Positions 9 through 62,161 of a stretch of 64,000 nt of DNA are shown one piece after another. Where the stretch lies: the sequence record OR513085.1; one strand, written 5' to 3'. Positions within the stretch are counted from its first letter, which is position 1. Each line of letters opens with the position of its first letter. The translations under genes and the position numbers were made by a program. The notes beneath the pieces are model-generated. The model worked only from the letters and a program-made list of their open reading frames with translations, did no database searches and was not told the DNA's origin.

Positions 9-998
9 ATGGATTATATGAAAAATGTTTGGCACTTAGATAAAGAATTGCATAAACATTTAAAAGAACATCCAGAACTTAAAGCTTCTTTCAAAGACCC
101 GGATTGGCGAGCTGAAGTTAAGCAAATAGATGTTAATTTGGATTACGTACTTTATATGGACACTGACTCGATGTACGTTACGTTTGAGGAATTATTTGAA
201 ACTATTGGCTATGACCCGCAACATGACGGTTCATATGCCAGGTTTATTATGGAAATGAATTCGTTCAGACTACGTGGATTGTTTAAGGAAAAAATTGGTG
301 AACGTGTAGCCGAAAGACATGGTGAAAACTTTTTAGTTTTCGATTTGGAATCGGTATCTGAAACTACATGTTTCCTGGCAAAGAAAAAATATGTGATGTC
401 GTACAAAATGGAAGACGAAAAAATTTATGACGACCCACTTAAACATATAAAAGGTAAAGGTGTTGAGCTAGTTCAGCAAAAATTAGCAGTGCCAATCAAA
501 GACATGATTCGTTTCATGGTAGTTCAAATGTTCAAAGGTAAAATTACGAATGTTAACTACAAAACTTACATGAGGTATATGTTCCAGCAATTCTCGCAAC
601 TACCTTTCCAGCAAAGATGTACTTTAGGTTCAGCAAACACGTATGATAAATATGTGCTTAACGATACTACAAGATGTGAATTTGCTTCTGGCGCAGGTGC
701 AGATGTTAAAGGTATGGCATATTACAACTTTGATGTTAATGCAAAAGGACTTAAAACAAAATATGAAGTTCTTAAAGGCGGTAAGTTAGTTTGGTATTAT
801 GCAAAACCTACGCAAGAGCATCCTGATAGATTTTCATACGCATTCCATGTTGACGAATATCCTGAGGAACTTGCTCCTGAAATGGACATCGAAACTCAAT
901 TTATGAAACTTGTAGCAGGACCTGTTGGTAGAATTGTAGCATGTGCCGGAATTGATGTAGGAAATCCTCTGGCATCTCAAATGATGATGGAATTATAA
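9..998 (+). CDS. gp43: Family B DNA polymerase, C-terminal part (probably continues upstream of the window)
   Basis: Motif C YMDTDSMYV, KKKY and KGKGVELVQ thumb motifs; frame is open to the window edge. Confidence 0.92.
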   Translation: MDYMKNVWHLDKELHKHLKEHPELKASFKDPDWRAEVKQIDVNLDYVLYMDTDSMYVTFEELFETIGYDPQHDGSYARFIMEMNSFRLRGLFKEKIGERVAERHGENFLVFDLESVSETTCFLAKKKYVMSYKMEDEKIYDDPLKHIKGKGVELVQQKLAVPIKDMIRFMVVQMFKGKITNVNYKTYMRYMFQQFSQLPFQQRCTLGSANTYDKYVLNDTTRCEFASGAGADVKGMAYYNFDVNAKGLKTKYEVLKGGKLVWYYAKPTQEHPDRFSYAFHVDEYPEELAPEMDIETQFMKLVAGPVGRIVACAGIDVGNPLASQMMMEL

Positions 999-2675: not shown

Positions 2676-3083
2676 ATGGCTGATGAAACAAAGAAGCAGG
2701 ATGCTGTAACTACAGCGCCAAAGAAAAAACCAGGCAGAAAGCCTTACTTAACAAAAGAGGAATTAAAGGCAGAGTTGGCAGTGTCACATGAACGTGGACA
2801 GCTAACAAACAAAAATGCTAAAATGTTCCAGCTTATGGTTAGCAAAATTCAGTCAAGAGTTTTTTATAAAGACCCTGCAGCAAAAGAAGACTGTGCAGCG
2901 CATGCGATGTATATCGTAGCTAAAAATTGGCATAAGTTCGACATGACTCAGGACAATCCATTTGGATTCTTTACAACTACAATTATCAATGCATTATCTG
3001 CAGGATGGAATGCTAATGAACGTAGGCCAATTCACATACCATTGGATGCATTCATTAACAACGACGCAGATAAAGCTGAGTAG
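2676..3083 (+). CDS. gp55: T4 gp55-like late sigma factor
   Basis: YLTKEELKAEL...EDCAAHAMYIVAKNWHKFDMTQDNPFGFFTTTIINAL matches the gp55 pattern (FD...NPxxYxT...NAF). Confidence 0.75.
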   Translation: MADETKKQDAVTTAPKKKPGRKPYLTKEELKAELAVSHERGQLTNKNAKMFQLMVSKIQSRVFYKDPAAKEDCAAHAMYIVAKNWHKFDMTQDNPFGFFTTTIINALSAGWNANERRPIHIPLDAFINNDADKAE

Positions 3084-5145: not shown

Positions 5146-7614
5146 ATGGCAACAATCAAAGAAATTTTAAAGCCTAACAACACGGCTAACGACATAGTCT
5201 TGCATGTTGGTGCTAACAAAACTACTACGCCAGAGAACGCATATTCAGACTTGCAATTTCAAGCAGGATTTTATTGGCCTATAGTAAAAGTTAGATCAAC
5301 TACATTCACTAAGCCAGCAATCAAAACGTTTGAGCTTAACTTCGGTTACCAACTATTACCAACGTTAGAGTTTATGGTTGTTGATGACTCTAGGTCGTTC
5401 CAACAATCAGACTATCCTGTTAAAAATGATGTAGTTACAGTATTCCTTGGCAACAACTACGATACCTCATCAAAGCCAATACAACTTGACTTTCTAATTG
5501 ATGACGTAACTACACTAAATAGCATGGATGGTTCCGGCTCGGCTAAGCATAGCTTTACCTGTACGTTAGCAATCGAGCATGCTTTTGAAAACATAAATTT
5601 TGCAGGAGAACAAACATCACTTAATGTTTTGTACGAACTTTGTAAAGCTATGAACTTGGGGTTAGTTACAAATTTGGATAGTACTAACGATCGCTACAAA
5701 TATCGTCAATATAGCAAAACAAATATTGAATATTTGAAAGATGTTTGTTCCAAAGTTTATGTCGATGATGCTACAATTATTCATTACTACATTGACCAGT
5801 ACTTTAGACTTAACGTTATTGACATTAATGCAATACTTAGCGCACCAGCACCTAGATTGCCAGTACGTCGTGACGTTACGTTCTTCAAAACGTTAGCAAA
5901 TCCTGAGGAGCTAGTACTAAACAATGCTCAGTACAACCTAACTAATGTACAATTTAAGTTTGGTAGCTACACTACGTCTAGTAATGCATTTGAAACATAC
6001 AAGGAAGTTAAGCCTGTCGAATCTACTGTAATTAACAAAGATTATTCGCAAGCTATTGTTAAAAGTACAGTAAAAGATACGCGAGTTAAGGCTAACGCTA
6101 CAACCGGAGGAGCTACAAAAAGTGAGAACGTTACAGAAAATAACGTAACAAATAGCAAACGTATACAAACAATTGCTATTGATGGCGAACACAACAGTAA
6201 CGTACAGCAATTAGGTAGCAATGCAAACAAAAGTAGGTTTAGATACTTAACAAACAACTCTATAACGCTAAGGCTTAACAATCCTAGCAACTTACTAAAC
6301 ATTAACCAAATGGTACCTGTTGAGTTGTACAAGCCAGATCAGTTTTCACAAACACCGCTAAAAAATTCAGATACTAACCTAGATAGCACACAACGGCCAA
6401 TAACGCCAGATGGTACAGAAGCCATTAATCCAACGTTATCAGGTGACTATGCAATAACAGGAATGACTTTTGCATATCGTCAAAATCAAAACCTTTGGCA
6501 GGAATTGAAGTTGATTCGTAGAGAATGGAAGCCTCAGCATTATGACGTTGACAAATCTCGTAAAATTGACTTATCAGAAGCTACATTCGGTGCGCCTAAG
6601 CCTTATACTTACCCACCACCGCCACCGCCACCTGCAGTAGACAACTCAGGCTATGGCGGGCAATATGGAGGATCATTAGGCAACTGGATGCAAATTGCTA
6701 GAGGTGAGCTAGGAACTGCGGAAGTTGCAGGTGCCGGTTCAAACCCAAGAATTGACGAATATCACCGAGTTGGAGGAGGACTTTCAGGAGGGCAGGCTAA
6801 CGATGCTACTGCATGGTGCGGTTCGTTTGTAGGCTGGTGTATGGTCAAGGCAGGCTACCCTAAACCTAACGGCTCGGCTGCAGCAATATCATGGGCTAAC
6901 TATGGAATACCTTGTGCTCCAGGTACAGTCGGCGCAATAATTGTGTTGAAGCTTAAGCCTAGTAGCATGACTTATTCAGGTAACCACGTAGGATTTTGTG
7001 CAGGCTTGAATGGTGATAAAGTTTCAATTTTAGGAGGTAACCAAGGCAACAGCGTTAGTCAGCTTAACATGGCTTCTGCAAAAGTTATTGCATGGAGGCT
7101 GCCACCCGGCTCACCTAGCCAAGGCATAGCTAACGCAGGCAATAGCGTAGCACCTACAGGACCTTTAAGAATTTCTAACCAAGGTGTTGAATTTATCAAA
7201 TCTAAGGAAGGTTGTAAGCTTACAGCATATTGGGATAGCTATGGTAAAGTATGGACCGTAGGTTACGGAAATACTAAACAAGCTAAGCCTGGCATGACAA
7301 TTACGTACCAACAGGCTGAGCAACTTTTACGTCAAGACATAGTTTACTTTGAAAACTACATAAATCAAAATGTAAAAGTTAAGCTAACGCAGGCTATGTT
7401 TGATGCTTTAGTATGTTTAACGTTCAACACTGGGCCAGGTAAAGTTTCACCTAGCTCAGCCATTGGAATAGCTTTGAAAAATCGGCAATACCAAACTGCA
7501 GCAGATACATTCCTACGTTACAACACATCAAAAGGTAAGTACTTGCAAGGCTTAGCTACTAGAAGGCAACAAGAACGCCAAATGTTTATGAGTCAAGGCG
7601 TAAATCCAATTTAA
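5146..7614 (+). CDS. Baseplate hub (gp27-like) fused to CHAP-like (TIGR02594-type) and GH24 lysozyme domains
   Basis: N-terminal hub-like region; poly-Pro linker; WMQIARGELG..AWCGSFV..GNHVGF; EGCKLTAYWDSYGKVWTVGYG (E-D-T triad). Confidence 0.75.
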   Translation: MATIKEILKPNNTANDIVLHVGANKTTTPENAYSDLQFQAGFYWPIVKVRSTTFTKPAIKTFELNFGYQLLPTLEFMVVDDSRSFQQSDYPVKNDVVTVFLGNNYDTSSKPIQLDFLIDDVTTLNSMDGSGSAKHSFTCTLAIEHAFENINFAGEQTSLNVLYELCKAMNLGLVTNLDSTNDRYKYRQYSKTNIEYLKDVCSKVYVDDATIIHYYIDQYFRLNVIDINAILSAPAPRLPVRRDVTFFKTLANPEELVLNNAQYNLTNVQFKFGSYTTSSNAFETYKEVKPVESTVINKDYSQAIVKSTVKDTRVKANATTGGATKSENVTENNVTNSKRIQTIAIDGEHNSNVQQLGSNANKSRFRYLTNNSITLRLNNPSNLLNINQMVPVELYKPDQFSQTPLKNSDTNLDSTQRPITPDGTEAINPTLSGDYAITGMTFAYRQNQNLWQELKLIRREWKPQHYDVDKSRKIDLSEATFGAPKPYTYPPPPPPPAVDNSGYGGQYGGSLGNWMQIARGELGTAEVAGAGSNPRIDEYHRVGGGLSGGQANDATAWCGSFVGWCMVKAGYPKPNGSAAAISWANYGIPCAPGTVGAIIVLKLKPSSMTYSGNHVGFCAGLNGDKVSILGGNQGNSVSQLNMASAKVIAWRLPPGSPSQGIANAGNSVAPTGPLRISNQGVEFIKSKEGCKLTAYWDSYGKVWTVGYGNTKQAKPGMTITYQQAEQLLRQDIVYFENYINQNVKVKLTQAMFDALVCLTFNTGPGKVSPSSAIGIALKNRQYQTAADTFLRYNTSKGKYLQGLATRRQQERQMFMSQGVNPI

Positions 7615-8123
7615 TGAAAATAAATATGTCAGAACAAGATAAAAATATAGCTAAAGGCCACAACATCAAAAACTTAAAGCCTCGAAAAGGTGGCCACTTC
7701 AAACAAGGTTATTTCGATGCTTCAGACAAATATGTCGGCGCCAGACCAGTAATTTACAGGTCTGGCCTCGAACTTAAAGTATTCAACCTCTTTGAAAGAT
7801 CGCCAGGAATTAAGCATTGGTCGTCTGAACCAGACTTCATAGTTATCAAGTACATGTACGGAGGTAAGCTTCGCCAATATAATGTTGATGTTTATGCAGA
7901 ATATCACAATGGCGTAAAGGAAATTATTGAGATTAAGCCATATGCGCAAACACAGGCTCCTGAAGCTCATCGCTATTTTGGCAAAGAAGCACGTTACGCT
8001 AAGGACGTAGAAACGTACCAACGTAATATAGCCAAATGGAAGGCTGCATGGGAATATGCTAATGAAAACAATATGAGGTTTAAGATCATAACAGATCATG
8101 CGTTAAAACAATTTAACATTTAG
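7614..8123 (+). CDS. gp4: Head completion nuclease (T4 gp4, TnsA-like)
   Basis: YRSGLELK, WSSEP, YNVDVY, IEIKP, NIAKWKAA, FKIITD. Confidence 0.88.
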   Translation: MKINMSEQDKNIAKGHNIKNLKPRKGGHFKQGYFDASDKYVGARPVIYRSGLELKVFNLFERSPGIKHWSSEPDFIVIKYMYGGKLRQYNVDVYAEYHNGVKEIIEIKPYAQTQAPEAHRYFGKEARYAKDVETYQRNIAKWKAAWEYANENNMRFKIITDHALKQFNI

Positions 8124-8357: not shown

Positions 8358-9164
8358 ATGAAAAACTTTTTCAGCTTTATCAACGAAGCAAATTCATTCA
8401 ATACAGACAACGGAAATCCTTTTAATGCAGGTGACATAGTTTATACAAAATCTGGTCGAATTAAAGGGGTAATTGCATCAGATTACGTAAGCAAATCATC
8501 TAACGGACTTTCAGTTTACGTCGACTACCTAGAACCTGGGTCATACAAAGGCGGCAAGAGTATGAAATTGCATTTAATTTCTGAACTTGTAGCATCTAGC
8601 GAAAAGAACATAGAAGGCAAAGAATTGGTGAAAAACTTCAAGCCTGGTGACTTAATAAAAATTAAAGCAACAGGAAATGTTGGCGAAATTATCGAACATG
8701 ACTTAGGCAAAAACAGAATTCAGTACAAAATTGTACAGGGCGAAAATATTACAAGACTAGATAATTTCGTTTCCGCATTTGGAATTGAACTTGTAGATGC
8801 TAAGAAAATGGCAGATGCTAAATTAGCCGAGCTTAAGGCTAACAAAGACCTTAACAAATTCTTTAAAATTTCAATGAACTGGGAATGCGAATTTACTTTG
8901 GAAAAGGCTGACGACAAAAAGCCAGGTAGGTTCTGGGTTAGAATTCAAACATTCGGAAAACGACTTTCTGAATATGAAGCTTACAAAACTGCAACTAACT
9001 TTGCGCCTCAGTCTAACAAAGAATATTCTGTTTCAGATTCGTATTACTTTGACACTAACGCATCTAAACCAACATCTTGGAAAGAACTTAAAGAAAAGTT
9101 TAGTGAAAGCGAATCAAATTCAGAAGTTTCTGGTAGAATTTACCGTTACTTAGACCTCAAATAA
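8358..9164 (+). CDS. Putative internal head protein with capsid-targeting leader and two KOW/SH3-like barrels
   Basis: MKNFFSFINE|A; FNAGDIVYTK..KGVI and FKPGDLIKIK..GEII repeats. Confidence 0.55.
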   Translation: MKNFFSFINEANSFNTDNGNPFNAGDIVYTKSGRIKGVIASDYVSKSSNGLSVYVDYLEPGSYKGGKSMKLHLISELVASSEKNIEGKELVKNFKPGDLIKIKATGNVGEIIEHDLGKNRIQYKIVQGENITRLDNFVSAFGIELVDAKKMADAKLAELKANKDLNKFFKISMNWECEFTLEKADDKKPGRFWVRIQTFGKRLSEYEAYKTATNFAPQSNKEYSVSDSYYFDTNASKPTSWKELKEKFSESESNSEVSGRIYRYLDLK

Positions 9165-9185
9165 CACATAAACAACAAAAGCTAC

Positions 9186-9220
9186 AAAAAGCCTGAACGT
9201 TCGTAACGTTCAGGCTTTTT
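9186..9220 (+). terminator. Intrinsic terminator
   Basis: AAAAAGCCTGAACG / CGTTCAGGCTTTTT. Confidence 0.8.
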
Positions 9221-9296
9221 GCGTTGTATGCAATATGCGTAGCATGCACAATTTAATTTAAATTGTGTACATATACTACACATTACAACTACAATT

Positions 9297-10055
9297 ATGC
9301 CTAGATTTAACACAAAATCAATATTTGCTTCGGCAACTAAATTTGCAAGAGGCATCCTTAGCTCAACACAAAAAATGTTTAATTCATCGGTTAAGGATGG
9401 CAATTATGACCTCAAAAAACGAATTGAGGAATCAGAATTTGTTAGAGATGATTCGTCCGCTAAGTCAGCTGCGCAAGATTGGCTACGTAAATACATGCAG
9501 AACAAAGACGTTCAGTTCAAGAAAAGACAAATGGAGGCAGGAAAGCTTTACTTTTTTCGCTATATGAAGCCTAAACACATGGACACTTTGGAATACTGGG
9601 ACCGAGGACCTCTAGTACTTTGCTTAGGCGGATATTGGTCGGCGGAAAATCAATACATTGAAGTTGGCTTAAACCTACACTTACTACCACCAAAAATTAG
9701 GCAGCAAGTACTAATTAAAGTATTTGACATGTTCAGACAACGTTATCGTGGCGAAATGTACGCGCCTACGCAACGTCCGCTAGAACTTAATTGGCAGGCT
9801 ATTGCTAGGCCTTTGCTACAATATGGAGCAGCTTTTGCATTTCGTAGCTACATACCACATCTACGTAGCCAAGCCATAGAGTTCAAATATGAAGACTGGG
9901 ATAAAGCAATATTTGTTCCTAACGAATATTTAAACAAAACTACGGCACTGGAATTGAGAAATATGTGGGCTGATTTTACTAGAAATCGTGCACTAAATCA
10001 ATTATCATCTAGCAACTTAGAAAACTTATTGTCTGGTAATGGTCAAAGAAGGTAG
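9297..10055 (+). CDS. gp2: DNA end protector protein (T4 gp2)
   Basis: GKLYFFRY..KH..TLEYWDRGPLV..GLNLHLLPPKIRQQ..RSY. Confidence 0.88.
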   Translation: MPRFNTKSIFASATKFARGILSSTQKMFNSSVKDGNYDLKKRIEESEFVRDDSSAKSAAQDWLRKYMQNKDVQFKKRQMEAGKLYFFRYMKPKHMDTLEYWDRGPLVLCLGGYWSAENQYIEVGLNLHLLPPKIRQQVLIKVFDMFRQRYRGEMYAPTQRPLELNWQAIARPLLQYGAAFAFRSYIPHLRSQAIEFKYEDWDKAIFVPNEYLNKTTALELRNMWADFTRNRALNQLSSSNLENLLSGNGQRR

Positions 10056-10368: not shown

Positions 10369-12078
10369 ATGGCAGTAGAAAATTTTAACAACAACATAAA
10401 CGTTACTAAGCAGAACGACTTGATGCGTAAACGTATCTTCAAGGAGATGCAGAACAACACAACAAAGTCTGTTATTAACAAAATTTACAACTCTATTCAA
10501 GGTAACCAAACCACCATGGACAACATCGTCAATGAAGACGCCGTATCTCCTGGCAACTTGGCAGGCAAAGCTACACAAACAGTTTTCAATACTAAAGTAG
10601 CTTCTGTAGCCGATTGTATTGGTGCTGCCTCTGAAATGGAAATTGCAGATATCCTAGATCGTTTTGTCGATGAAATGATTGTTTACGGAACTGGCAACAA
10701 CAGATTCTGTGAACCTGACTATTCGTCAATTGAGCAATTGGATATTACTGACAATGCTAAGCAGGAACTAAAAGACGAAATTGACAAAGCGTTTTCAAGA
10801 GTTTATAGATTGCTTAAGTACTCACGTCATAACATTCGTAGCGTTGAGGACGTTTCTGCATTAGCAAAACGTTGGCTAACTATTGGTAAGCTAGCATACT
10901 TTATTGTCTATGACAACTTAGAAAAGCCTACAAAAATTCTAGACATTATCCCAATTGACTTACGTAGATACACGCTAATTAAGCATGATATCCCAGTTAA
11001 AGTTAATAATGGGAAATATACATCGACTAAGACAGTTACTTATTGGACACTTCACGAAAACACTGGTAACGACCAGTACGGAAGAACAATGTATAACTCG
11101 GCAATGACTAACTTTACTTACTCGTTAGATAACGCACAGTTCCAAAAAGACATTTTTACTGACATGGAAATTACTATGGCAGACTGGTCTAGAGTAGAAT
11201 TTGAACTATCTAACGTACAGTCATATACTGCCATGCTACTTAGACCTTTCAACATTCTACGTATCATGGAACGTACAAAAATAATCTGGGCTGTAATGAA
11301 CTCACGTTACAGAACAATGTATAAAATTCCTGTTGCTAACTTAGGTAAGCAAAGAGGTAAGCAGGTTATTTCAATGGTAATGAACGACTACAAGGAAAAT
11401 GTAGAATTCAATTCGACTACCGGACAAATTTCAGTCAACGGACAGCCGGACTTACCTTTTAACAAGGACATTTGGATGGGCCGAGGTAATGCAGGTGAAC
11501 CTGAAATTATACCACTTGGCGGTAATGGTCCTGATATGTCAGACACTTCTACATTAACTCCGTTCTACCAAAAGTTACAAAAAGCGTCTAAAATGCCAAT
11601 GTCTAGATTCGAGGAAAACAATGCAGTTTACTGGGATATTAACCCAATGGCAATTTCTCTTGAAGAACGTAGATTTGGTAAATACAACGAAAAAGTTCAG
11701 CAACAATTTATCGAACCTCTACGTAAATGTACGTACTACCAGCTACTTATAGCTAATCCAAAATATATTGGCGACACTAACATTTATGATGCTCTTAACA
11801 TTCGTTGCAACAGATACAATGAACTTGAGCAAATGATGGAACTTGAAACTTTGAACAAGAAAATCGAACTTATCGGAGATGTTAAAGACAAAATGAAAAT
11901 TTACGATAAGGATGGCAACGAAGTTCCACTTATATCTACTAGATTGCTACTTGACAAATACTTACCGCTTACTAAGGCAGAAAAAGAACTTAACGAGAAG
12001 TACATCAAGGAAGAGCAGGAGAATATTAAGAAGGCTATACAAAATCAAACATATTCTGGTGAAAACCAAGGTTATTAG
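10369..12078 (+). CDS. gp20: Portal protein (T4 gp20)
   Basis: ILDRFVDEMIV, LRIMERTKIIW..RTMYKIPVANL, FNSTTGQI, DIWMGR, LQKASKMPMSRF, ISLEERRFGK. Confidence 0.92.
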   Translation: MAVENFNNNINVTKQNDLMRKRIFKEMQNNTTKSVINKIYNSIQGNQTTMDNIVNEDAVSPGNLAGKATQTVFNTKVASVADCIGAASEMEIADILDRFVDEMIVYGTGNNRFCEPDYSSIEQLDITDNAKQELKDEIDKAFSRVYRLLKYSRHNIRSVEDVSALAKRWLTIGKLAYFIVYDNLEKPTKILDIIPIDLRRYTLIKHDIPVKVNNGKYTSTKTVTYWTLHENTGNDQYGRTMYNSAMTNFTYSLDNAQFQKDIFTDMEITMADWSRVEFELSNVQSYTAMLLRPFNILRIMERTKIIWAVMNSRYRTMYKIPVANLGKQRGKQVISMVMNDYKENVEFNSTTGQISVNGQPDLPFNKDIWMGRGNAGEPEIIPLGGNGPDMSDTSTLTPFYQKLQKASKMPMSRFEENNAVYWDINPMAISLEERRFGKYNEKVQQQFIEPLRKCTYYQLLIANPKYIGDTNIYDALNIRCNRYNELEQMMELETLNKKIELIGDVKDKMKIYDKDGNEVPLISTRLLLDKYLPLTKAEKELNEKYIKEEQENIKKAIQNQTYSGENQGY

Positions 12079-12147: not shown

Positions 12148-12396
12148 ATGAAAACATTTACATACTTTATTAATGAAGCTAAACGAAACGAAAATTTACG
12201 TAATGACATTTATGCTAAATTGACTGCAGGCTCATCTAAAGTACCGCTGACAGTTATACAAAGATTAACTGCAATGATACAAAATAAAAAAGTATCGTTG
12301 ACTGCAATTTTATCATTTGCTGAAAGTTTCATAAAAGACAAAGACTTACTTAATGAAATTGTTAGCATGCTAAATTCAAATTTCGTTAATGAATAA
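12148..12396 (+). CDS. Small prohead core/internal protein (position of T4 gp67/68)
   Basis: MKTFTYFINE|A leader; lies between portal and protease. Confidence 0.55.
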   Translation: MKTFTYFINEAKRNENLRNDIYAKLTAGSSKVPLTVIQRLTAMIQNKKVSLTAILSFAESFIKDKDLLNEIVSMLNSNFVNE

Positions 12397-12439: not shown

Positions 12440-15400
12440 ATGAACAACACACAGAACTTAGGTTTTCTTGTAGAAAATCATGTTTCGCACAACGTCTTCC
12501 AAAGAATTGACGAATCTGTTGCGTTACCAGATGGAGTTCTGATGCTTATGCGAGGTACGTTTATTCCTATGGACGTTCCTGGCGAGAATGGCAGATGGTA
12601 CACTTACGCTGACTATGCACCGCAGGTAGAAATGTTACTACCTAAAATTGCTAGGAAAGAATGTTTTGGAGAAATTGAACATCCTCAAAGAGTTCACGTT
12701 CCTTACGACTTAGCGTCTCACAGAGTTGAGGAAGTTTACTACGACAAAGCATCAAATTCTTGGATTGGTACTATCGCAATTTTAGATACTGACAAAGGTA
12801 GAGCAGTTTACGATATCGCAAAAACTGGAGCTCCTATATACGTTTCGCATAGAGCGTTAGGTTCAGTTGACCAAAAGACTGGCAAAGGAATTCTACTTAA
12901 ATTGCTTACTTGGGACGTAACTTCCAATCCATCGTTTAAGGCTGCAGAATTTAGCAGAGCCGAACTTATCAATGAATCCGCTTACGTTTACTTGCCGCTA
13001 GAAGACGAAATGCTTAACGAATGCTATGCTGAGCTTGGCTTAACGTCAGAAGACTTCATCAACGAATCTACTGTTACTCTAACTCAAAGCGAATTGTTAG
13101 CTATGCTTAATGAAGCGTCTAACAATGCTAACGCTATAGCTACCGAACGTTACGCAAAGCTTTTAGCTAACGCAATTAATGTAAATGCCAATTTTGTTAA
13201 TGAACATATTGCAATTCAGCCATCACAAGTTATCGACGTCGTTAAGAAAATTAAAGAACGTCCTTGGATGACTGCCCAGGAAATGCTTGACCCGGAATTC
13301 AAATTTAACGACGAATATATGCATCCGCTAGATTTAGTTGCTGCAATGCAAGCTCTGGCTTCAGAAGGCATGCTATACGACGAAGATGCTCCTGGTTTTG
13401 ATGAAAACGAACCTCAAATAGCATCAGTTATTGCAGTACCTCAATTAGAAGAAGTAATTGCTAATTGGCAAATGGAGCAAGATGCTTTAGCTGCGGATGT
13501 TATTGCTGCCGAAGAAGCCAAAGCTGCTAAGTTTTCAAATGAATCTGTAGACTTCGTAAATAATTTTGCATCTGAATATGCTTTTGTAGGTCCTTATGAA
13601 GCTACAAAACAAGCAGTAGCTGCATTAACTGGCAAAGCTATTGGTGATCTTTCTGAATCTGTTGAAGCTAGAATTTCCGACATAATGGTTAACGCTAAAC
13701 CTGGTAATGCTGAGGAAATTATAAATGCTTTAGTTGACGCTGAACTATATGTTAGTGAAGCTTTAGAAGCAGCTAGCAATCCTAATAAGAACAAAGAAAT
13801 GCTACAAATTTTAGTTAACTTTACAAAATATGTTGAACTAAAATTACATGTATTCCACCACAATACTAAAAGCTACGCACAACATAAAGCATTCGATACA
13901 GCATACAAAAGCTTCCAAAAGCTAACTGATAGCATAATTGAACAAGCTATGGGATATAGCGGCGAACGCTATGATACTATAGACCTTTCAGTTTCTATGC
14001 CAATTGTATATGCTGACGATTCTGGAGCTGATGTTATAGAATCACTTTATTCGTTGTCAAAAGTTATTAAGCTAATTTCTGAGGATTTGATTGCCGGAGG
14101 ACTTTCTACGTTATCTGACGATGTTTCAGGAATTGGTGCGCAACTTTCGTACTTAATGACATTAAACGAATCTCAGCTAGATGAATTTGCTAATGAAGGT
14201 GTTTCTAGCTGGCTTAAAGATAAGTGGTCTAGGCTTAAACGTTGGGCCAACTCAAACATAGATGCTACTGTAACTATTGATGGAGTAGACTATATTATTG
14301 ATGACATTCAGGAAGACGACAAAGTAATTTGCAGAGATTCCGATGGCAAAGCCAAAGAATTTACCTTTGACGAGGTTTATAAATACTTAAACGAAAACAA
14401 CATATTACAACCACAAACAATGGCAAATACACACATTAACGAGGGCGTTGACGGAGCAAAAGCAAACGTTCTAGCTATTCTTTCCGGAGCAAAATTTGTA
14501 AGCTCGGTAGATAATGCAACAGATTATGACTATTCAATTGACGACGACGGACTTACTGCAGCTTCTGATGAAGTGGCATTAGATATCCTAGCCGTTCTTA
14601 AAAATAACGCAGTTACTGCTTCTGTAGATGGAGCTAAAGTAGCTATAACTTTCGGAATTGTTCCTGCAGTAGTTACTGACCAAATTAACGAATCTTTAGA
14701 AGACTTCTGTAACAAAATGCTTAGCTATGCTAACGAATCAGGTAATGCAGGAAACATTATTAACGCAGCAATGGCTATTCAAAATGCTAATGGCGTTATA
14801 AACATTAACGAATCTTACGTTACGTATTGCGAACAAATTGTAGAATATGCTAACGAATCAGGAGTAGCTTCTGACATTGCTAACGCTGGATCGCTATTAC
14901 AAAATGCTTTAGAAGCAAAATTTGCTAATGAGGCCGAAGAAACTGCAGCAATCGTATCTGATGCTACAATTGCCGGAGATGTTGCTGTAGATGGAGGTAA
15001 TGAAAGATATGCAGTAGGATGCGTATTCTCAGTAGATTCTCAAAACTTCACAGTTGCTGAATTTGACGGAACTAACGTAGTAACTACTACTGGTGAAACT
15101 TTCACTGTAGCTGAACTAAAGAAAGACGATGACGCACCAATTCCTGGAACTGATGATGCATTAGAACCTGGTGCTCCTGTAGAAGGCGACAATACTGTTG
15201 ATATGACTGTAACTCCTGTAGGAACTATCGGTTCAATCAACGAATCTTATAGCAAAACTAACAAGCCAAAAATTGGTGATAAAGTTACTTTCATCATGGA
15301 TAACCCAGACGGTCCTGGATTTGGTAAAGTTAAAAATGGTGAAAAAGTTACTGCTACTGTAGCTGATTTTGGTGACTGGGAAGGTGACGGTTATTCTCTT

Positions 15401-16063
15401 GACGTAGTACTTACTGGAGTTTCTGAGGAATACAACGTTTACACTACTGAACTTATCAATGAAGCTGCTGAGGACTTAACTGACTTACCTTCTGGAACTG
15501 CAGAGAACATTGACCATAAAGTTATCGAGGATGGCAATGCTACTGACATTCCTAGCAACCTCGACAAACCACTAGAAAACAAATTAGCTGAGGACTTCCT
15601 TGCTAGAGCTGATAAAGGCGTAACATTTGAACAATGGATTGTTGACCAAGCTTCTGCTAACGAATTAGTTACTCCTCAGTTAGTAATGACGGTTAAAACA
15701 ATTATTTCTGACATGGAAGTTAAGCAAATGATTAACGAATCTGCAGTACTAACCGCAGCATTTATTAACGAATCTGCAGAAGCTACTGAACAATCAGCTC
15801 ACTTAAAGCTTATTGGTGACCACATCGGACAATCTCACAAATACATGTTTGAACACTTGAACGAATCTGCAAAAGGAGTTCTAGTTGCTCAAGCTGAATT
15901 GTATAACTTGTCCAGCCAAAATATCCACGACTTCCTTGATACAAGAAACTGGGCACAAATCGCTAATACTACAATTAACGAATCAGTAGCTCAAATTTCT
16001 GCAAATATTCAACAAAATGACTGGAAATCTGCACTTAAAGCATCTTTCAGAGCAGGTAGATAG
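12440..16063 (+). CDS. gp21: Prohead protease (gp21 family) fused to a roughly 1030-aa acidic scaffold/cargo polyprotein
   Basis: GENGRWY, CFGEIEHP (His), VSHRALGS (Ser), WDVTSNPSF in the first 175 aa; about 20 xNE|S/A/G sites downstream. Confidence 0.88.
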   Translation: MNNTQNLGFLVENHVSHNVFQRIDESVALPDGVLMLMRGTFIPMDVPGENGRWYTYADYAPQVEMLLPKIARKECFGEIEHPQRVHVPYDLASHRVEEVYYDKASNSWIGTIAILDTDKGRAVYDIAKTGAPIYVSHRALGSVDQKTGKGILLKLLTWDVTSNPSFKAAEFSRAELINESAYVYLPLEDEMLNECYAELGLTSEDFINESTVTLTQSELLAMLNEASNNANAIATERYAKLLANAINVNANFVNEHIAIQPSQVIDVVKKIKERPWMTAQEMLDPEFKFNDEYMHPLDLVAAMQALASEGMLYDEDAPGFDENEPQIASVIAVPQLEEVIANWQMEQDALAADVIAAEEAKAAKFSNESVDFVNNFASEYAFVGPYEATKQAVAALTGKAIGDLSESVEARISDIMVNAKPGNAEEIINALVDAELYVSEALEAASNPNKNKEMLQILVNFTKYVELKLHVFHHNTKSYAQHKAFDTAYKSFQKLTDSIIEQAMGYSGERYDTIDLSVSMPIVYADDSGADVIESLYSLSKVIKLISEDLIAGGLSTLSDDVSGIGAQLSYLMTLNESQLDEFANEGVSSWLKDKWSRLKRWANSNIDATVTIDGVDYIIDDIQEDDKVICRDSDGKAKEFTFDEVYKYLNENNILQPQTMANTHINEGVDGAKANVLAILSGAKFVSSVDNATDYDYSIDDDGLTAASDEVALDILAVLKNNAVTASVDGAKVAITFGIVPAVVTDQINESLEDFCNKMLSYANESGNAGNIINAAMAIQNANGVININESYVTYCEQIVEYANESGVASDIANAGSLLQNALEAKFANEAEETAAIVSDATIAGDVAVDGGNERYAVGCVFSVDSQNFTVAEFDGTNVVTTTGETFTVAELKKDDDAPIPGTDDALEPGAPVEGDNTVDMTVTPVGTIGSINESYSKTNKPKIGDKVTFIMDNPDGPGFGKVKNGEKVTATVADFGDWEGDGYSLDVVLTGVSEEYNVYTTELINEAAEDLTDLPSGTAENIDHKVIEDGNATDIPSNLDKPLENKLAEDFLARADKGVTFEQWIVDQASANELVTPQLVMTVKTIISDMEVKQMINESAVLTAAFINESAEATEQSAHLKLIGDHIGQSHKYMFEHLNESAKGVLVAQAELYNLSSQNIHDFLDTRNWAQIANTTINESVAQISANIQQNDWKSALKASFRAGR

Positions 16064-16238: not shown

Positions 16239-16246
16239 TATAAATA
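16239..16246 (+). promoter_or_regulatory. Late promoter TATAAATA
   Basis: Exact T4 late consensus upstream of the capsid gene. Confidence 0.75.
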
Positions 16247-16278: not shown

Positions 16279-18000
16279 ATGCAAACATTATTTCCAAACG
16301 CCAACCAAGTTGGCAACATGGTAGACAGATGGTCTGAATTTATTAACGAAGCAGCTCCTAAAGGTGGTAGTACTCTATCTGATGGTAAGAGAGCAATGAT
16401 CGCTCAGGTTGCAGAATTCCACGCTCATGGCAAGGATATCGCAACTGGAGGATTCTTGAACGAATCTATCATCGGTACAAATATTATGTCAAACGGTGCT
16501 AACATGAACGGAATGGGTTCTATTACTCTTCCTACTAACGTTAAAGCTGGATTTACCCAATTCAACCAACAAACTCCTGGTTCTGGTGATGTTCCTGTGA
16601 CTGTGCTTTCAATGGCAATGTCAGTAGCTGCGACTACTATCGGTTTTGATTTGTTACCAACTATTCCAATTTATCAGCCTGCAGTAATGCTACAGTACGT
16701 AGATTACCTTTACGGTGGTGGTAAACTTGATTCGGCAGATAACCCTCCTTTGATCGTTATGGCTAGAATTGAGGAACTTAGAGGACACCTTGATCTTAGA
16801 CAAGGTTCTAAAGTTGCTATCCACTCTGTTGCAGGTGATGCTACTTCTGGATGGACATTTGAGTTCGTTGGATTTACAAGATTAGAAGGATATGCAACTT
16901 TAAAGGTTGACACTTTCGCTAACAAAGTAACTCCTGCATTAGGTTCTCTTGCTTTAGTTGAATTTACTATTGACGGTGGTGCTCCTGTAACAGTTGCTCC
17001 TGCTGGAAATCCTAAATTGGAATTAGCTAGAGCGGTTGAAAACCACTTCTCAATGTTCACAGCTTACGGAAACCTTGATGGTGAAGGAGTTGATAGAGCT
17101 GAAGCTGAAAAAGGTACAAGATCAGTTATCGAAATGAGAACTTACTCTAAAGTAGTAAGAACTAAAGAACATGCTGTAGAAGGTATCGTTTCAAGACAAC
17201 AAGCTAGAGATATCAAAGCTATGGGTCTTGATGCATTCCCTCAATTGAAAGTTGCAATGCAGAATGACATCTCTCAGTCATTAAACAAGGAAATCCTTAT
17301 GAGAATGAGACAGATGGGTGTTTCTACACACTTAATGTTACAGAAATCTCAAGGAGTTAACTTGAACACTTACATTGACTTACCAGCTAACACTTCTAAG
17401 CCAATTGTACAGTTCAAAACTCAGCCTCTTATCGACAAGAACGGAGTTAACCAAACTGCTAACTTCTTACCAGCTCCTAACTCTGAAACTAACTCAGCTG
17501 CTGAAAACCTTTGGACTAGACAAAGAAGAGTAACTTCTACCATCATCACTGGTGCTGCTCTAGTAGGACAAGCTTCTTTCCACGGTTCTGCTGACGCTGT
17601 AGTTGTTAACTCTCAGTTAATGGCAGCTATTAAGGAATCTGTTGGTTACCAGCCAGCTACTATTGAGAACAAAATCTCTCAGTCTACAAAGGCTCTTTAT
17701 TATGCAGGTACTATTTCTGACGTTGCAGTTTACTGTGACCCTAACATGAAATGGAACGATACTACTGCTATCTTGGCTAGAACAGGTAAAACTGATGACG
17801 GTCTTGATATTAACCAATTAGCAGAAGGGTTAGTTTTTCTTCCGTATGTCTTGAGTTCGGAAGTTGAAATTATCACTGAAGGAACTATGGGTCCTAAAGC
17901 GTTAATCGAAACTGTTTATGCTATCGGAGAAATTGGTATCAGACCAGAACTTGCTTACTTAACTATCGTATTCGATAACGGATTTGGTAGATGGGCATAA
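16279..18000 (+). CDS. gp23: Major capsid protein (T4 gp23 family)
   Basis: PGSGD..VLSMAMSVAATTIGFDLLPTIP, VVVNSQL, YAGTI, EGLVFLPY, EGTMGPK; follows the protease; FLNE|S at residue 62. Confidence 0.92.
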   Translation: MQTLFPNANQVGNMVDRWSEFINEAAPKGGSTLSDGKRAMIAQVAEFHAHGKDIATGGFLNESIIGTNIMSNGANMNGMGSITLPTNVKAGFTQFNQQTPGSGDVPVTVLSMAMSVAATTIGFDLLPTIPIYQPAVMLQYVDYLYGGGKLDSADNPPLIVMARIEELRGHLDLRQGSKVAIHSVAGDATSGWTFEFVGFTRLEGYATLKVDTFANKVTPALGSLALVEFTIDGGAPVTVAPAGNPKLELARAVENHFSMFTAYGNLDGEGVDRAEAEKGTRSVIEMRTYSKVVRTKEHAVEGIVSRQQARDIKAMGLDAFPQLKVAMQNDISQSLNKEILMRMRQMGVSTHLMLQKSQGVNLNTYIDLPANTSKPIVQFKTQPLIDKNGVNQTANFLPAPNSETNSAAENLWTRQRRVTSTIITGAALVGQASFHGSADAVVVNSQLMAAIKESVGYQPATIENKISQSTKALYYAGTISDVAVYCDPNMKWNDTTAILARTGKTDDGLDINQLAEGLVFLPYVLSSEVEIITEGTMGPKALIETVYAIGEIGIRPELAYLTIVFDNGFGRWA

Positions 18001-18128: not shown

Positions 18129-19559
18129 ATGATTAAACGTAAAAGACAAACATATAATGACGTTATAGCCGATTGCAAAAAAGCTCATGGTAATTATTAT
18201 GACTATGTAGATACGTCTGCTACTTGGTATAAGAAAACTGACAAACTTAGAATTATATGTCCTGTTCATGGCGAATTTGAACAATCTGGCAAAAACCATA
18301 GTAAAGGCCAAGGCTGCACAAAATGCAAAAAGAACATACAATCGTATGACCAAATTATAACTAAAGTCCTGGAAATTCATGCGTCCAGAGGCTATATTTA
18401 CGAAGACACTTCGGCAGAATTTACAGTTTCAACATCGTCATTCCTTAAAGCTAATTGTCCTAAGCATGGCGAATTTGAAGTCAGGGCGCATGCACATAGT
18501 GTAGGTGTTTTAGGATGTCAAGGATGCTATACGGATGATTTAGTTGATCGTCAAAGATATAGTAAAGATGAAATGCATAGCATTTGTAAAGTTATTTTAG
18601 CTAAACGTAAATGTACAATTTTAGACATAACTTTTTATGTCGATAAAGCAAATTCAAATTTTATAATAAATTGCCCTAAGCATGGCAATTTTGAAAAGAA
18701 TGCTTATCAAATTTTATTAAAACAAGGTTGCCCTAATTGCGTAGGCTATAATTCCTCAAAGGCTGAAACATTTTTGAGAGATCATTTAGTTGGCCAAGGT
18801 ATTGCAGATGCTGTAGGTCGTAAGCGTTTTAGACATCATGAAACTAATAAACTTTACGAAATAGACGTGCAATCGCCAAGCTTAAAAATTGGAATAGAAT
18901 TTAACGGAATACATTGGCATAGAGGCGAAGTATTCAAGCATAAACATATGCTAAAAACTACAAGCCTAGACTATATGAACTGGCAGTTAATTCATATTTT
19001 TGAGGATGAATATCATGCAAAATTTAATGCAGTAATGTCAATGATTAATCATAAGCACGGAGTTACTAAACAAAAAATTCATGCCAGGAAAACTAAGACT
19101 GCTTTAATTGACGAAGACACTTACGTACAATTCTGCAACGAAAACTGCATACAAATTTTTGACAAGCTGGCATTTAATTACGTAGGGCTATATTTAGCAG
19201 AAACATTAGTTGGCGTAATTGCGTATAACGTAGATACTAAAGCTAACGTAGACATCATAAATATTGCGATGTTAAACAATCATAATATAATTGGCGGAGT
19301 CGGCAAATTAGTAGCTTATGTAGAACGTTCGGAACGTCCTGCATCAATAACCGCTACGCTAAACAGGCAATTCTCAACTAAGCATAACGTTTTTGCAAAA
19401 CTAGGCTTTGATTTTGTTGAATATACAGAACAGAATTTTATGTACAGTATACATAGCAGTCCTAGGATTTTGCCAGAACATACGTCTATTGAACATCAAA
19501 TAGATTCTAATAAAGTCTGGGATGTCGGTAACATTATTATGAAAAAAGTGTTCAAATAA
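18129..19559 (+). mobile_element. Free-standing Hef-like homing endonuclease with three CPxHG zinc-ribbon repeats
   Basis: CPVHGEF..GQGCTKC x3; EIDV..KIGIEFNGIHWH (PD-(D/E)XK, Vsr-like); KIHARK..; VWDVG. Confidence 0.7.
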
Positions 19560-24877: not shown

Positions 24878-25789
24878 ATGGCAAAAACATTTGAACTTAT
24901 AAAAGACGGTAGTATAAAACATGCAGGCCGTACACTTTACAAAATAAAAGCTTTAGTAGACATTCCAAATCATGGCGTAAATGCCGGAGATATTGGTGGA
25001 TGGGTAGAATCTGAAAATAACCTACAAAGCGATGAAGCATGGATTGGCGATGCAGCCATGGTTTATGGTGACGCTGTAGTTTCAGAAAAGGCTTTAGTTA
25101 CTGAATTTGCACAAGTTTCAGGATTTGCTGAAATTAAAGGCTTTGCAAAAGTACAAGGTAATGCCAAAATTTCAGACAAAGCCAGAATTTGGGGAAGCTG
25201 TACTGTTGAAGACAACGTTACGATAGGAGGCTTTACATTCATTGCAGACTTTGCAATAGTACGAGGATTTGCTAAAATTGCAGGAGAAATTCAAATTATT
25301 GAAAACGCTAGAATTTGGGGTCATGTAAAAATTTATGCTAACGCTATAATTAGAGGTCATGCACAAATTTATGGTGATGCTGCCATTTATGGAGGCACTA
25401 TTTCAGGTAATACGGTAGTTTGTGACTATGCAAAAATAGGTTCTCATGTTATGCTAAGCTATGGAATTTTTAAAGGTAGGGCTGTAGTTACTACACCTAG
25501 TGACTACGCAGCAATTGCTAACATAGGCTCAAGGAATGGAACTACTATAGCATATAAAACTAACGTACTTGCTCAAAGACCATCACAAATTGAAATTATT
25601 TGCGGATGTTTCACAGGTGACTTACAACAATTCTACAATATTGTACGTAGACAATATGGCGGGCATAACGTAGGTATTGCGGGTAGACGTTACTACAAAG
25701 AATACATGGCAGCTATACAACTTATTGAAGCCAAATTCTCTGTGAAAGTAAAGCGTAAAGGTAGATTTTTGGCATGGTTAAGATCATGA
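24878..25789 (+). CDS. Left-handed beta-helix (hexapeptide repeat) phage protein
   Basis: GRTLYKIKAL..GDIGGWVESENNL followed by many AxVxGxA hexapeptide repeats. Confidence 0.8.
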   Translation: MAKTFELIKDGSIKHAGRTLYKIKALVDIPNHGVNAGDIGGWVESENNLQSDEAWIGDAAMVYGDAVVSEKALVTEFAQVSGFAEIKGFAKVQGNAKISDKARIWGSCTVEDNVTIGGFTFIADFAIVRGFAKIAGEIQIIENARIWGHVKIYANAIIRGHAQIYGDAAIYGGTISGNTVVCDYAKIGSHVMLSYGIFKGRAVVTTPSDYAAIANIGSRNGTTIAYKTNVLAQRPSQIEIICGCFTGDLQQFYNIVRRQYGGHNVGIAGRRYYKEYMAAIQLIEAKFSVKVKRKGRFLAWLRS

Positions 25790-30178: not shown

Positions 30179-30841
30179 ATGGCAAAAATCTTAAAAGAAA
30201 CTACAACAATTGACTTAGGCATAAAATATGCTGGCAAAGTATCAAAATCAATCACAGATACTTTCGCTGACCGACTTAACAACATTACAATCAATGCAAT
30301 CGTAACACAGTTTGCACATTCGCCAGAAGGTGCAAAAATTATGTTCATGGGTGTTGGCAAAAATTCATACCTTTCGCATAAACTTGCAGCTACTTGTCAG
30401 TCATTGAATATCAATGCAAACTACTTTGATTCTGTACATGCTATGCATGGTGACTTAGGCGCTTTACGTTCAGGTGATATTGTAATTGCGTTTTCAAAAT
30501 CTGGCAAAACTGCCGAGTTGCTTCACACTTTAGCTTACCTTAAAAAGCACAAAAAACATTTTGGTGTAACTACTGTAGGTGTTTTTGCATCAGATGATGA
30601 TTATAATTCTGAGGCGGTTACTTCAATGGAAATAACAAAAAACACAGACTACCAAATTTTGCTTAAATCATGCCAAGAATTGGACGACAACAAAACGGTA
30701 CCGACAACTTCAGCATTGGTTATGCAGGCAGTAGGCGACGTTATAGCATTACAAATTGCATCTAATAACGGCCTTACTACAGAACAATTTGGATTAACAC
30801 ACCCAGGCGGCTTAATTGGTGCAACACATAACAAAGACTAA
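30179..30841 (+). CDS. kdsD: Arabinose-5-phosphate isomerase (KdsD/GutQ SIS domain, no CBS)
   Basis: MGVGKN..KLAAT, AMHGDLG, SKSGKTAEL, VPTTS, GDVIA, FGLTHPGGLIG. Confidence 0.85.
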   Translation: MAKILKETTTIDLGIKYAGKVSKSITDTFADRLNNITINAIVTQFAHSPEGAKIMFMGVGKNSYLSHKLAATCQSLNINANYFDSVHAMHGDLGALRSGDIVIAFSKSGKTAELLHTLAYLKKHKKHFGVTTVGVFASDDDYNSEAVTSMEITKNTDYQILLKSCQELDDNKTVPTTSALVMQAVGDVIALQIASNNGLTTEQFGLTHPGGLIGATHNKD

Positions 30842-31328: not shown

Positions 31329-31393
31329 TCTAACAAATGCCGGTATTACTGCCGGCATTTGTGTATTTTAGCATTAAATTTAAAAATCTACAC

Positions 31394-36200: not shown

Positions 36201-36365
36201 CTGAGTGGTGGCATTCCTGGTGCAGATTCTGCATGCGAAGAGGGCCCAGTTACTCAGGAAGATATTGCAAAAATTGACAGTATTTGTGATGCTTGCGGTG
36301 AAAACTATGGTGCTATGATGGGTAAATTTGATGATTATCTTAGCCAGAAAGCTACTGTTAACTAA
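33231..36365 (+). CDS. 1044-aa late protein with about 18 xNE|S/A/N sites; probable internal head polyprotein
   Basis: Late promoter; motif density matches the protease scaffold. Confidence 0.7.
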   Translation: MAKFTKLAGEVAKLYDGKVTGSIIKFDSEDDLFKAADEIADQFAFTMDQDKLTIEFLNENIDIKFLKQFASAMGVSQFTNESVDKLTKQIGISLNEAEVDTVTTLLNKVESPEYPDVAKVAADPMQQIADTITNSAATGATLDIVDGENSAKQIVIRTDDKLIAATPTDIVAINESAYVHYGMHQLNENEYNALKALEDVNARRRFLTSMGIMDLDADSISKNLELLKPLHPDMDANGLLPLNEANVTIINVSNAFANEASNALANVANLYAKFVNENNSWTVKSYDAADVKATLVSAGIPANEIFMNESKDMDIYNLQSKVALFCKKSGLSGADVQKALLLVNLEAKEAKPNFSKYVNIKDSMLNESADAQDAEEMFERKNKAYAKMISKDGLAAELTEFLASFGENAKVPEDGLVGEYGELSADLQEGINKFMEERGYFANESTNWTLDKKSKGEYNEWHITGDALNKVKSRDEIFDVLPELKGIYKTLIDSKNGLKYSDRVKVGSITVTGDDMGDILNFLKGNGSLNESVDANEEIESVYKFESIKDIEVAAAAKGYVCKGHSGQSESSDKYKFDILAKGGKKCAMGIYDKTKKIAILDVNDEHKGTALLEAKMINESFTNESAGIENLFASMGATFNKELRTDGTYKYQVTGLVGYANEATEVPNTADLIAFEILKLYGNFKEATRLSRSVVKQALRNVIDTLKVDDSWLTDESKFISLFEAIDTMRVDFGPIDESSNLPTKTSELKINAYVAFKNNGARIFGKISGIKGDEVSVKLTNGKQMLVDAKDVILGLENYVNESIPQQEAKIAGTKAKIAEIKSEAKAASANASSKISTEKAKLVNARATLKNLKKSKSLNESKAPQGVGGNVYVVPNSSFQNPWLTHKLETSLGMRGYQFANQFKSDIVNADIMVDYYVAKDDKVSEVCMDMEGTSKPQKTEIIATPVSIYINENNVLCFNENPIPTEIAENGQIGSVAQFKEYAKYILSGGIPGADSACEEGPVTQEDIAKIDSICDACGENYGAMMGKFDDYLSQKATVN

Positions 36366-61861: not shown

Positions 61862-62161
61862 ATGAAAACATTTTTCACATTCGTTAATGAATCCGTAACA
61901 AACTATCCTAAGGTATCATCTACTGCAGATTTAGTTGCGGCTTTACCTGGATTAGTTGCAGAAAAATCAAAAGTTCAAGAAGGCAAACTATATAACACAC
62001 TATTAGCAAAAAACGATGGTAGCGTAGTCATAGAATTGCAAACTTCTAATGCTGCAATAAAGGATGCTACTACAGAAGTTCTTGAATTTTACAAAAAAGT
62101 AAAATCATTTAAGACTTATGAGTACGATAGTAACATGGGCATATTTTCTGTAAAATTCTAA
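61862..62161 (+). CDS. Small protein with capsid-targeting-like leader MKTFFTFVNE|S
   Basis: 99-aa ORF. Confidence 0.6.
   Translation: MKTFFTFVNESVTNYPKVSSTADLVAALPGLVAEKSKVQEGKLYNTLLAKNDGSVVIELQTSNAAIKDATTEVLEFYKKVKSFKTYEYDSNMGIFSVKF

Follow-up and report, generated by a model that had tools for sequence, protein, structure and literature searches.

A ten-residue leader shared by otherwise unrelated genes of Chryseobacterium phage MA9V-2 is a candidate T4-type capsid-targeting propeptide

The genome of Chryseobacterium phage MA9V-2 (record OR513085.1, 218,539 bp) contains a set of genes that share a short N-terminal leader and have unrelated bodies. The window analysed here is the final 64 kb of the record (record position = window position + 154,539), and coordinates are those of the window unless another sequence is named. 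ORF268 (MA9V2_205; 8358-9164, plus strand) is composed of the leader, encoded at 8358-8387, and a 258-residue orphan body. Pfam and PHROG searches indicate that ORF268 is surrounded by a T4-like head module, which includes genes for a gp5-like lysozyme hub (5146-7614), a gp4-like head-completion protein (7614-8123, plus strand), a gp2-like DNA-end protector (profile match; 9297-10055, plus strand), a gp20-like portal protein (10369-12078, plus strand), and a gp23-like major capsid protein (Pfam Gp23 E = 6e-13; 16279-18000, plus strand). The gp4-like and gp2-like genes are the left and right neighbours of ORF268, in agreement with a preliminary description of this DNA. According to its sequence, MA9V-2 is a T4-like jumbo phage, only distantly so. 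Its DNA is ~90% identical to that of phage MA9V-1 (OR050627.1). Both are lytic myoviruses of the host C. indologenes MA9 (PMC13414440, PMC10537231).

A six-frame search of the window with the pattern MK.F..F[IV]NE gives exactly four matches, all at the first methionine of an open reading frame (ORF). With the predicted cutting position shown as a slash, the leaders are MKNFFSFINE/A in ORF268, MKTFTYFINE/A in an 82-residue gene between the portal and protease genes (12148-12396, plus strand), MKTFFTFVNE/S in the 99-residue gene MA9V2_265 (61862-62161, plus strand), and MKNFFQFINE/S in the 199-residue gene MA9V2_269 (63311-63910, plus strand). The last three genes are referred to below by their first positions. 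The back-translated pattern matches the window four times, compared with a mean of 0.00 matches in 100 dinucleotide-preserving shuffles, and no further matches appear in the window when two mismatches are allowed. The preliminary description named these four genes and proposed a genome-wide pattern search; in the whole 218.5-kb genome the same four ORFs are the only strict matches. Their start codons are identical in the GenBank annotation. The leader is conserved as a peptide, because the codons of the four genes vary at synonymous positions, and this variation rules out a signal acting at the RNA level. The bodies, with lengths of 82-268 residues, are unrelated as originally proposed: without the leader they have no BLASTP similarity to one another (all E > 0.1). 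Sequence searches of Pfam, PHROG, NCBIfam, and PDB found nothing above noise for any of the four bodies, including no homologue of T4 IPI, IPII, IPIII, or Alt.

The same genome encodes a protease with a matching candidate cutting site. The gene at 12440-16063 (plus strand) specifies a 1207-residue protein, in which a gp21-type Peptidase_S77 domain (residues ~23-267) is followed by a polyprotein of ~1000 residues. The protease is identified by matches to PF03420 (27.3 bits, cut-off 27) and to phrog_207 (E = 5.5e-26, residues 23-267). The protein contains 24 Asn-Glu dipeptides, 18 of them followed by Ser, Ala, or Gly, and 17 sites of the form [ILVAFM]NE[SAG]; all dipeptides and sites are positioned past residue 179. 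A second polyprotein of 1044 residues (33231-36365, plus strand) has no protease domain and contains 12 strict sites, from which ~15 pieces are predicted. Two more sites, FINE/A (E24) and FLNE/S (E62), are located in the N-terminal region of the major capsid protein, the predicted propeptide of which is encoded at 16279-16464. Genome-wide, the motif [ILVAFM]NE[SAG] was found 67 times versus 19.6 expected, and the excess is located in the protease polyprotein (17), the 1044-residue polyprotein (12), the gene at 39107 (3), MA9V2_054 (2), and the capsid protein (2). In 35 internal NE[SAG] sites, position P4 is Phe, Tyr, or Met in 20, P3 is Ile, Leu, Ala, or Val in 31, and P1' is Ser in 25, Ala in eight, and Gly in two. 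The leaders have the same features from P4 to P1', plus an invariant Phe at position 4. Their end, [ILV]NE/[SA], is identical in sequence to the motif of the polyproteins and of the capsid-protein propeptide, and in MA9V-1 and MA9V-2 Ser or Ala follows Asn-Glu in every tagged gene. The protease polyprotein also carries a DUF5856 module (Dps/ferritin-like, phrog_858; 13856-14155, plus strand) between sites E368 and E577. This Dps-like module may act as an internal head protein that binds DNA.

The four strict members stand, but the family is larger than given in the preliminary description, with about six further genes that have variant leaders of 7-10 residues and one that has a 19-residue propeptide. 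About ten genes are tagged in the MA9V-2 genome with leaders of 7, 8, or 10 residues, and there are ~11 candidates when the 19-residue propeptide, which belongs to a putative hydrolase described below, is included. Outside the window, two additional 10-residue leaders are MRTFTQIINE/S in MA9V2_054 (L003 40608-41072, minus strand), which adjoins the terminase gene and has a weak ParB-like match, and MQTFLQTINE/S in MA9V2_179 (L005 40538-40918), a GNAT acetyltransferase (Pfam E = 1.3e-6). The latter is a candidate packaged modifying enzyme with a role comparable to that of T4 Alt. Leaders of eight residues, also outside the window, are MKNFFINE/S in MA9V2_023, which is beta-solenoid/bactofilin-like, and MKQFFVNE/S in MA9V2_101. 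Leaders of seven residues are MSNYINE/A in a 433-residue gene (36599-37900, plus strand), present too in the metagenomic relative L140, and MNFNKNE/A in a 234-residue gene with three internal sites (39107-39811, plus strand).

The set of tagged genes differs between the two phages. Seven tagged genes of MA9V-2 have MA9V-1 orthologues with 88-97% amino acid identity, and the substitutions in their leaders are confined to free positions; the 61862 orthologue, for example, is 88% identical and has a sole leader difference at such a position. The genes 63311, MA9V2_101, and MA9V2_023 have no counterpart in MA9V-1, where the site of 63311 is occupied by an unrelated gene without the tag. Two tagged genes, starting MRDFFINE/A and MKNFFVNE/A, are unique to MA9V-1. 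When the polyproteins of both phages were split at the motif and the modules compared, every large insertion or deletion was found to lie on module boundaries, that is, at sites. An 87-residue module of the 1044-residue protein, bounded by two sites, is missing in MA9V-1, and both of its flanking modules match. The protease polyprotein of MA9V-1 has an insertion of ~133 residues at a junction where two modules of MA9V-2 adjoin directly. In the 39107 protein of MA9V-2, the C-terminal module follows VNE/S; it corresponds to a separate MA9V-1 gene, MA9V1_184, that starts with MKGFFINE/A and has the same body, and this gene looks shortened relative to MA9V-2 by one in-frame stop. Because this module is internal in MA9V-2 and a free tagged gene in MA9V-1, there appear to be two routes by which a cargo module can be released: excision from a polyprotein, or removal of a leader of its own. 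No earlier description was found of modules that, as these sequences suggest, alternate between a polyprotein segment and a free tagged gene. The MA9V-1 homologue of the 39107 gene (L010 6449-7676) has a different C-terminal part of ~200 residues.

The gene at 38221-39066 (plus strand), which neighbours the tagged genes at 36599 and 39107, encodes a 281-residue protein with a 19-residue propeptide (38221-38277) that ends in FINE and is followed by Cys20. In an alignment of the query with the best 120 of 144 homologues (E <= 0.001), 121 sequences in total, this Cys is invariant in 119, of which 15 begin with Met-Cys. In the propeptide-bearing homologues, the last propeptide residue is Glu in 104 of 104, and P3 is Ile, Leu, or Val in 103 of 104. 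The AlphaFold2 model of the protein, based on a 62-sequence alignment, has a predicted local distance difference test score (pLDDT) of 89 and a predicted template modelling score of 0.87; confidence is low for residues 1-20, and residues 21-27 form the first strand. The best Foldseek match of the model is isopenicillin-N acyltransferase 2x1c (E = 4e-8, template modelling score 0.62), followed by NAAA, bile-salt hydrolases, and acid ceramidase. The match of the protein to Pfam PF03417, at 21.9 bits, is under the gathering cut-off of 23.2, and several of its homologues carry PF03417 in precomputed matches. As modelled, the product is a cysteine N-terminal nucleophile (Cys-Ntn) hydrolase with an alpha-beta-beta-alpha fold, similar to peptidase C45/AAT.

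Such Ntn enzymes require a free N-terminal Cys. The phage proteins have in common with the autoproteolytic Cys-Ntn hydrolases isopenicillin-N acyltransferase, NAAA, acid ceramidase, and bile-salt hydrolase the fold and the invariant Cys that starts the mature chain. In contrast to those enzymes, the residue before the Cys is the Glu of an [ILV]-x-E sequence, which is a prohead-protease site, or, in 15 sequences, the initiator Met. Cleavage before Cys20 by a protease is likely because the Cys of this family always follows [ILV]-x-E, which would otherwise be hard to explain, and the family supports the predicted cut site independently of the leaders. The alignment suggests that the capsid protease, rather than self-cleavage, unmasks the hydrolase in trans, so that the protease may arm a packaged enzyme. 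A literature search found no paper connecting a prohead protease with an Ntn-hydrolase, and no earlier description was found of a putatively packaged Ntn-hydrolase with its nucleophile at the protease site.

The protease and capsid protein of MA9V-2 are closest to those of Sphingomonas phage PAU (29% and 33% identity, respectively); the host of PAU is actually a Sphingobacterium (PMC3738902). The next relatives are the Tenacibaculum phages pT24 and PTm1 and the Lak megaphages, and, for the protease, cyanophages. The PAU proteins gp142-146, 149, 150, 152 (scaffold), 153, and 154 all start with MK[TS][LI]..L[YF]E (L013 10876-18560). Two of these leader genes are annotated as 'internal capsid protein', and the PAU capsid protein contains KLNE/S. 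PAU resembles MA9V-2 in having ~10 leader genes, which in PAU surround the portal and protease genes. In contrast to those of MA9V-2, the PAU leader genes are grouped within the head module, with the scaffold gene among them; their leaders have Leu/Tyr instead of Phe/Ile at the aromatic positions, and many have a second KLNE/ site. Literature searches found no paper on the PAU leaders in the library covered, and none for the leader strings. Phages pT24 and PTm1 have protease-scaffold fusions with [ILV][NTS]E/S sites, but no common N-terminal leader in the stretch examined. The metagenomic relatives L138 and L140, reached via the Ntn-hydrolase, show polyproteins and tagged genes in the same arrangement, and the capsid protein alone as an IMG/VR query retrieved no relative.

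A scan of IMG/VR with the back-translated strict pattern gave at least 119 loci; all IMG/VR counts are among the matches listed. At least 96 of 111 peptide matches are at ORF starts, and the bodies form at least 54 clusters. The listed loci include at least 28 further ORFs with a looser leader, in which P2 is free, and at least 22 loci with two to five tagged ORFs. T4 core genes are present in at least 19 of the 119 loci. A tagged ORF occupies the gp67/68 slot in L069, where it lies between gp20 and gp21, and in L116, where it immediately follows gp20. The largest listed body cluster has relatives in T4-like cyanophages, of which Syn9 gp114 is uninformative. The contig L031 (5914-9422) contains five tandem genes that start with MKTFKQFI.E or MKSFKSFINE between T4-like gp19 and gp18.

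The organization of the leader can be compared with that of phage T4. Internal proteins of T4 have propeptides of 10-19 residues, which direct them to the prohead core and which gp21 cleaves off (PMC9026906). The first ten residues of IPIII suffice for encapsidation; targeting depends mainly on residues 4 and 7, and processing on residues 8 and 10 (PMC9026906). The internal proteins of T-even phages are diverse, with conservation limited to the capsid-targeting sequence (CTS), and one of them, IPI*, inhibits the GmrS/GmrD nuclease (PMC3012670). The cleavage site of gp21-family proteases is a three-residue motif, after the Glu of which they cut (PMC5694885). In the six 10-residue leaders of MA9V-2, residue 4 is Phe in all six, residue 7 is Phe or Ile in five, residue 8 is Ile or Val in all six, and residue 10 is Glu in all six. 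Judged by the position numbers in PMC9026906 and not by residue-by-residue alignment, the leaders have the same pattern of positions 4/7 and 8/10 as the CTS of IPI, IPII, IPIII, and Alt, combined with predicted cleavage after Glu and an S77 protease. They also belong to the same class of short propeptides, since the MA9V-2 proteins are predicted to be cut after 7, 8, 10, or 19 residues. As in T4, the bodies are unrelated and fast-changing, and the repertoire is not conserved among relatives.

The system of MA9V-2 differs from that of T4 in several respects. The host belongs to the Bacteroidota, and P2 is a fixed Asn, whereas T4-related papers show few determinants beyond the P1 Glu (PMC9026906, PMC5694885). 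The protease is the N-terminal part of a fusion with a 1000-residue polyprotein, there is a second polyprotein without a protease, and a module may be internal to a polyprotein or a free tagged gene. The MA9V-2 system is known from sequence alone, and none of its bodies is homologous to T4 internal proteins. Phages phiKZ, 201phi2-1, and SPN3US have a homologous protease that cuts after Glu (A/S-x-E), and many of their inner-head proteins are processed at multiple sites each (PMC5694885). However, propeptides of the phiKZ type are mostly longer than 100 residues, whereas those of MA9V-2 have 7-19 residues, as in T4.

The leader is probably a T4-type capsid-targeting propeptide coupled to the S77 protease of the phage, and we hold this explanation with good confidence. 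The proposal in the preliminary description of a portable tag like that of the T4 internal proteins is upheld as far as sequence goes, by the S77 protease, the motif in the polyproteins and the capsid propeptide, the T4-mapped positions, and the variable repertoire. Cleavage at NE/ is better supported than targeting. The leader system would be a new example of a known mechanism. The tagged proteins would be made alongside the head proteins, and the N-terminal part of the leader, with Met-Lys and aromatic residues at positions 4 and 7, would dock the cargo onto the scaffold or core of the assembling prohead. The sequence [ILV]-Asn-Glu followed by Ser, Ala, or Gly would be recognized by the gp21-type serine protease that the phage itself encodes, and this protease, after shell assembly, would clip off the leader and cut up the scaffold polyproteins at further copies of the motif. 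Once mature, the bodies would remain in the head together with the DNA, and some of them at least would leave with it at infection. The cargo would be heterogeneous, including the GNAT acetyltransferase, the ParB-like protein, the beta-solenoid protein, the Cys-Ntn-hydrolase, and orphans, and the catalytic N-terminus of the hydrolase would be created by the same cleavage. We infer docking, the actual cleavage, head retention, ejection, and a counter-defence role, of which the last two are plausible. Since the bodies lack informative homologues, injection and anti-restriction activity are entirely inferred.

Host defences first encounter those phage products that are packed in the head and enter the cell together with the DNA. 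Because of their fast-evolving bodies, for which homologues are lacking, such proteins are difficult to identify. With a short leader that is linked to the protease motif of the same phage, candidate packaged proteins could be listed from sequence, and the ~11 candidates of MA9V-2 are from a phage studied for the biocontrol of a plant-root pathogen.

Several observations weigh against a capsid-targeting propeptide. The searches of Pfam, PHROG, NCBIfam, and PDB did not link the bodies to any known internal or anti-defence protein. The mature bodies are weakly basic, with net charges of +1 to +4, whereas T4 internal proteins are strongly basic. The genes 61862 and 63311 sit among non-structural genes. 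Phage RB43, a true member of the T4 family, has the strict leader followed by Ala on the small ORF UvsW.1, beside the UvsW helicase gene (L133 695-925, minus strand). The virion protein data published for the MA9V phages consist of an SDS (sodium dodecyl sulfate) gel of MA9V-1, with no mass spectrometry (PMC13414440, PMC10537231), and the presence of the tagged proteins in virions, their cleavage, and their ejection are predictions from sequence.

The alternative that survives best, which is nevertheless unlikely, is that the leader is a propeptide for cleavage only. NE/ would be cut, the preceding residues would have no addressing role, the proteins would enter the head through other contacts or by bulk capture, and MK.F..F would be a side effect of the sub-site preference of the protease. 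This would account for the P4 and P3 preferences common to the leaders and the internal sites, and for the leaders of seven and eight residues (MSNYINE, MK.FFINE), which lack the 4/7 spacing. However, Phe4 of the 10-residue leaders is invariant, whereas its counterpart in the internal sites, P7, is hydrophobic in just 37% of the 35. Moreover, the N-terminal part is the targeting determinant in T4 (PMC9026906), and a protease confined to the prohead can cut only what is already inside.

It is less probable still that the leader is not a capsid signal at all, and that a generic N-terminal amphipathic helix, serving as a translation start context, for stability, or for another interaction, happens to resemble a protease site. 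The strict pattern of RB43 UvsW.1 and the position of two of the four genes outside structural regions would fit this explanation, as would the listed IMG/VR ORFs, just 49 of 96 of which have Ser, Ala, or Gly after Asn-Glu. UvsW.1 is the only ORF with a loose leader in 48 kb of RB43, and to our knowledge no report places it in the capsid; it is either a chance look-alike or has an unsuspected link to the capsid. Because UvsW.1 carries the strict pattern, the pattern alone is no proof of packaging. However, the end of the MA9V-2 leader is identical to a motif of which the head polyproteins of this phage contain 35 copies, and the Ser or Ala after Asn-Glu has no exception in the tagged genes of MA9V-1 and MA9V-2. 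A generic helix would also leave the position of the Ntn-hydrolase Cys exactly at P1', and the tagged ORFs inside T4-like head modules of independent contigs, without explanation. Chance, or paralogy of four diverged duplicates that retained only their N-termini, has nothing in its favour beyond the ten common residues and is very improbable given that no matches are expected in shuffled sequence, that the bodies of such different lengths are dissimilar, and that the leader heads at least 54 unrelated body clusters among the listed IMG/VR matches.

A broader proposal can be made, which we consider possible but somewhat short of an even chance. MK.F..F[ILV]xE may serve as an address label throughout the superfamily of T4-related phages, from jumbo phages of Bacteroidota to marine myoviruses, from which the packaged proteome could be read in genomes. 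The prohead protease may be an activating convertase that cuts [ILV]-x-E/Cys and arms the packaged Ntn-hydrolase only inside the capsid, and recombination at the sequence coding for the site may transfer cargo modules from polyproteins to free genes or the reverse.

The tagged genes of the window probably differ in function. ORF268 is leader-tagged and encodes a mildly basic (net +4), probably packaged protein with 258 mature residues. Its sole relative is the MA9V-1 orthologue, with 92.6% amino acid identity; nothing beyond MA9V-1 was found in 5.8 billion clustered proteins (word-indexed), in 1.84 billion representatives (HMMER), or in phages (tblastn). The slot of ORF268 between the gp4-like and gp2-like genes is variable, and different genes occupy it in PAU, pT24, and PTm1. 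The preliminary description also assigned ORF268 a terminator, its own promoters, and two KOW/SH3-like repeats. The terminator was confirmed as a bidirectional hairpin after the gene (9184-9222), with an 18-bp stem and T/A runs. The promoters were not, as sigma-70-like matches are at chance level (7 found versus 8.5 expected). The repeats have no Pfam, PHROG, or NCBIfam match, and their self-alignment score of 30 was equalled in 112 of 1000 shuffles. The single-sequence AlphaFold2 model of ORF268 (pLDDT 38.8) is unusable and too poor for judging a KOW/SH3 fold.

The gene 12148 is in the position that corresponds to the prohead-core genes gp67/gp68 of the T4 family, and gp67 of RB43, also 82 residues long, occupies the same slot. 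The two proteins do not align. Based on its slot, the product of 12148 is probably a prohead-core or scaffold accessory protein. The earlier view that all four genes encode injected effectors is thus doubtful for 12148, whereas ORF268, 61862, and 63311 are candidate orphan cargo as judged from their sequences. The 12148 protein ends likewise in ...FVNE (12382-12393), which is conserved in MA9V-1, and MA9V2_054 has a second motif three residues from its end. These end-of-protein motifs may be sites of C-terminal processing, or may form a tail that resembles a cleavage product and binds the protease.

The heptamer ATAAATA, first picked out from the window's own upstream regions, is positioned 21-39 nucleotides before 61862 (24 nucleotides), 63311 (21 nucleotides), and the capsid gene, and 112 nucleotides before ORF268. 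It is present within 100 nucleotides upstream of four of ten tagged genes versus 19 of 285 others (p = 0.004). The heptamer is enriched in intergenic DNA, with eight of 15 plus-strand copies within 5.2 kb of non-coding sequence. Copies are located at 16240, 61838, 63290, 8246, 2629, 22712, 39886, and 52053, several of them 21-52 nucleotides before starts. The window also contains a small sigma-like gene with region 2 only (2676-3083).

Other features of the MA9V-2 genome were noted. A 476-residue endonuclease-like gene (18129-19559) is located directly 3' of the capsid gene, and PTm1 has a Hef-like homing endonuclease in the equivalent place. The family-B DNA polymerase is annotated as two pieces (window 9-998; record 149314-155537 region), with two hypothetical genes and a TnpB-family gene between them. 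A set of metabolic genes for envelope sugars includes an LpxD-like acyltransferase (24878-25789), a KpsF/GutQ isomerase (30179-30841), and GlmU (31337-33154), and a Kdo-8-P phosphatase and CapA from the same set are encoded elsewhere in the MA9V-2 genome.

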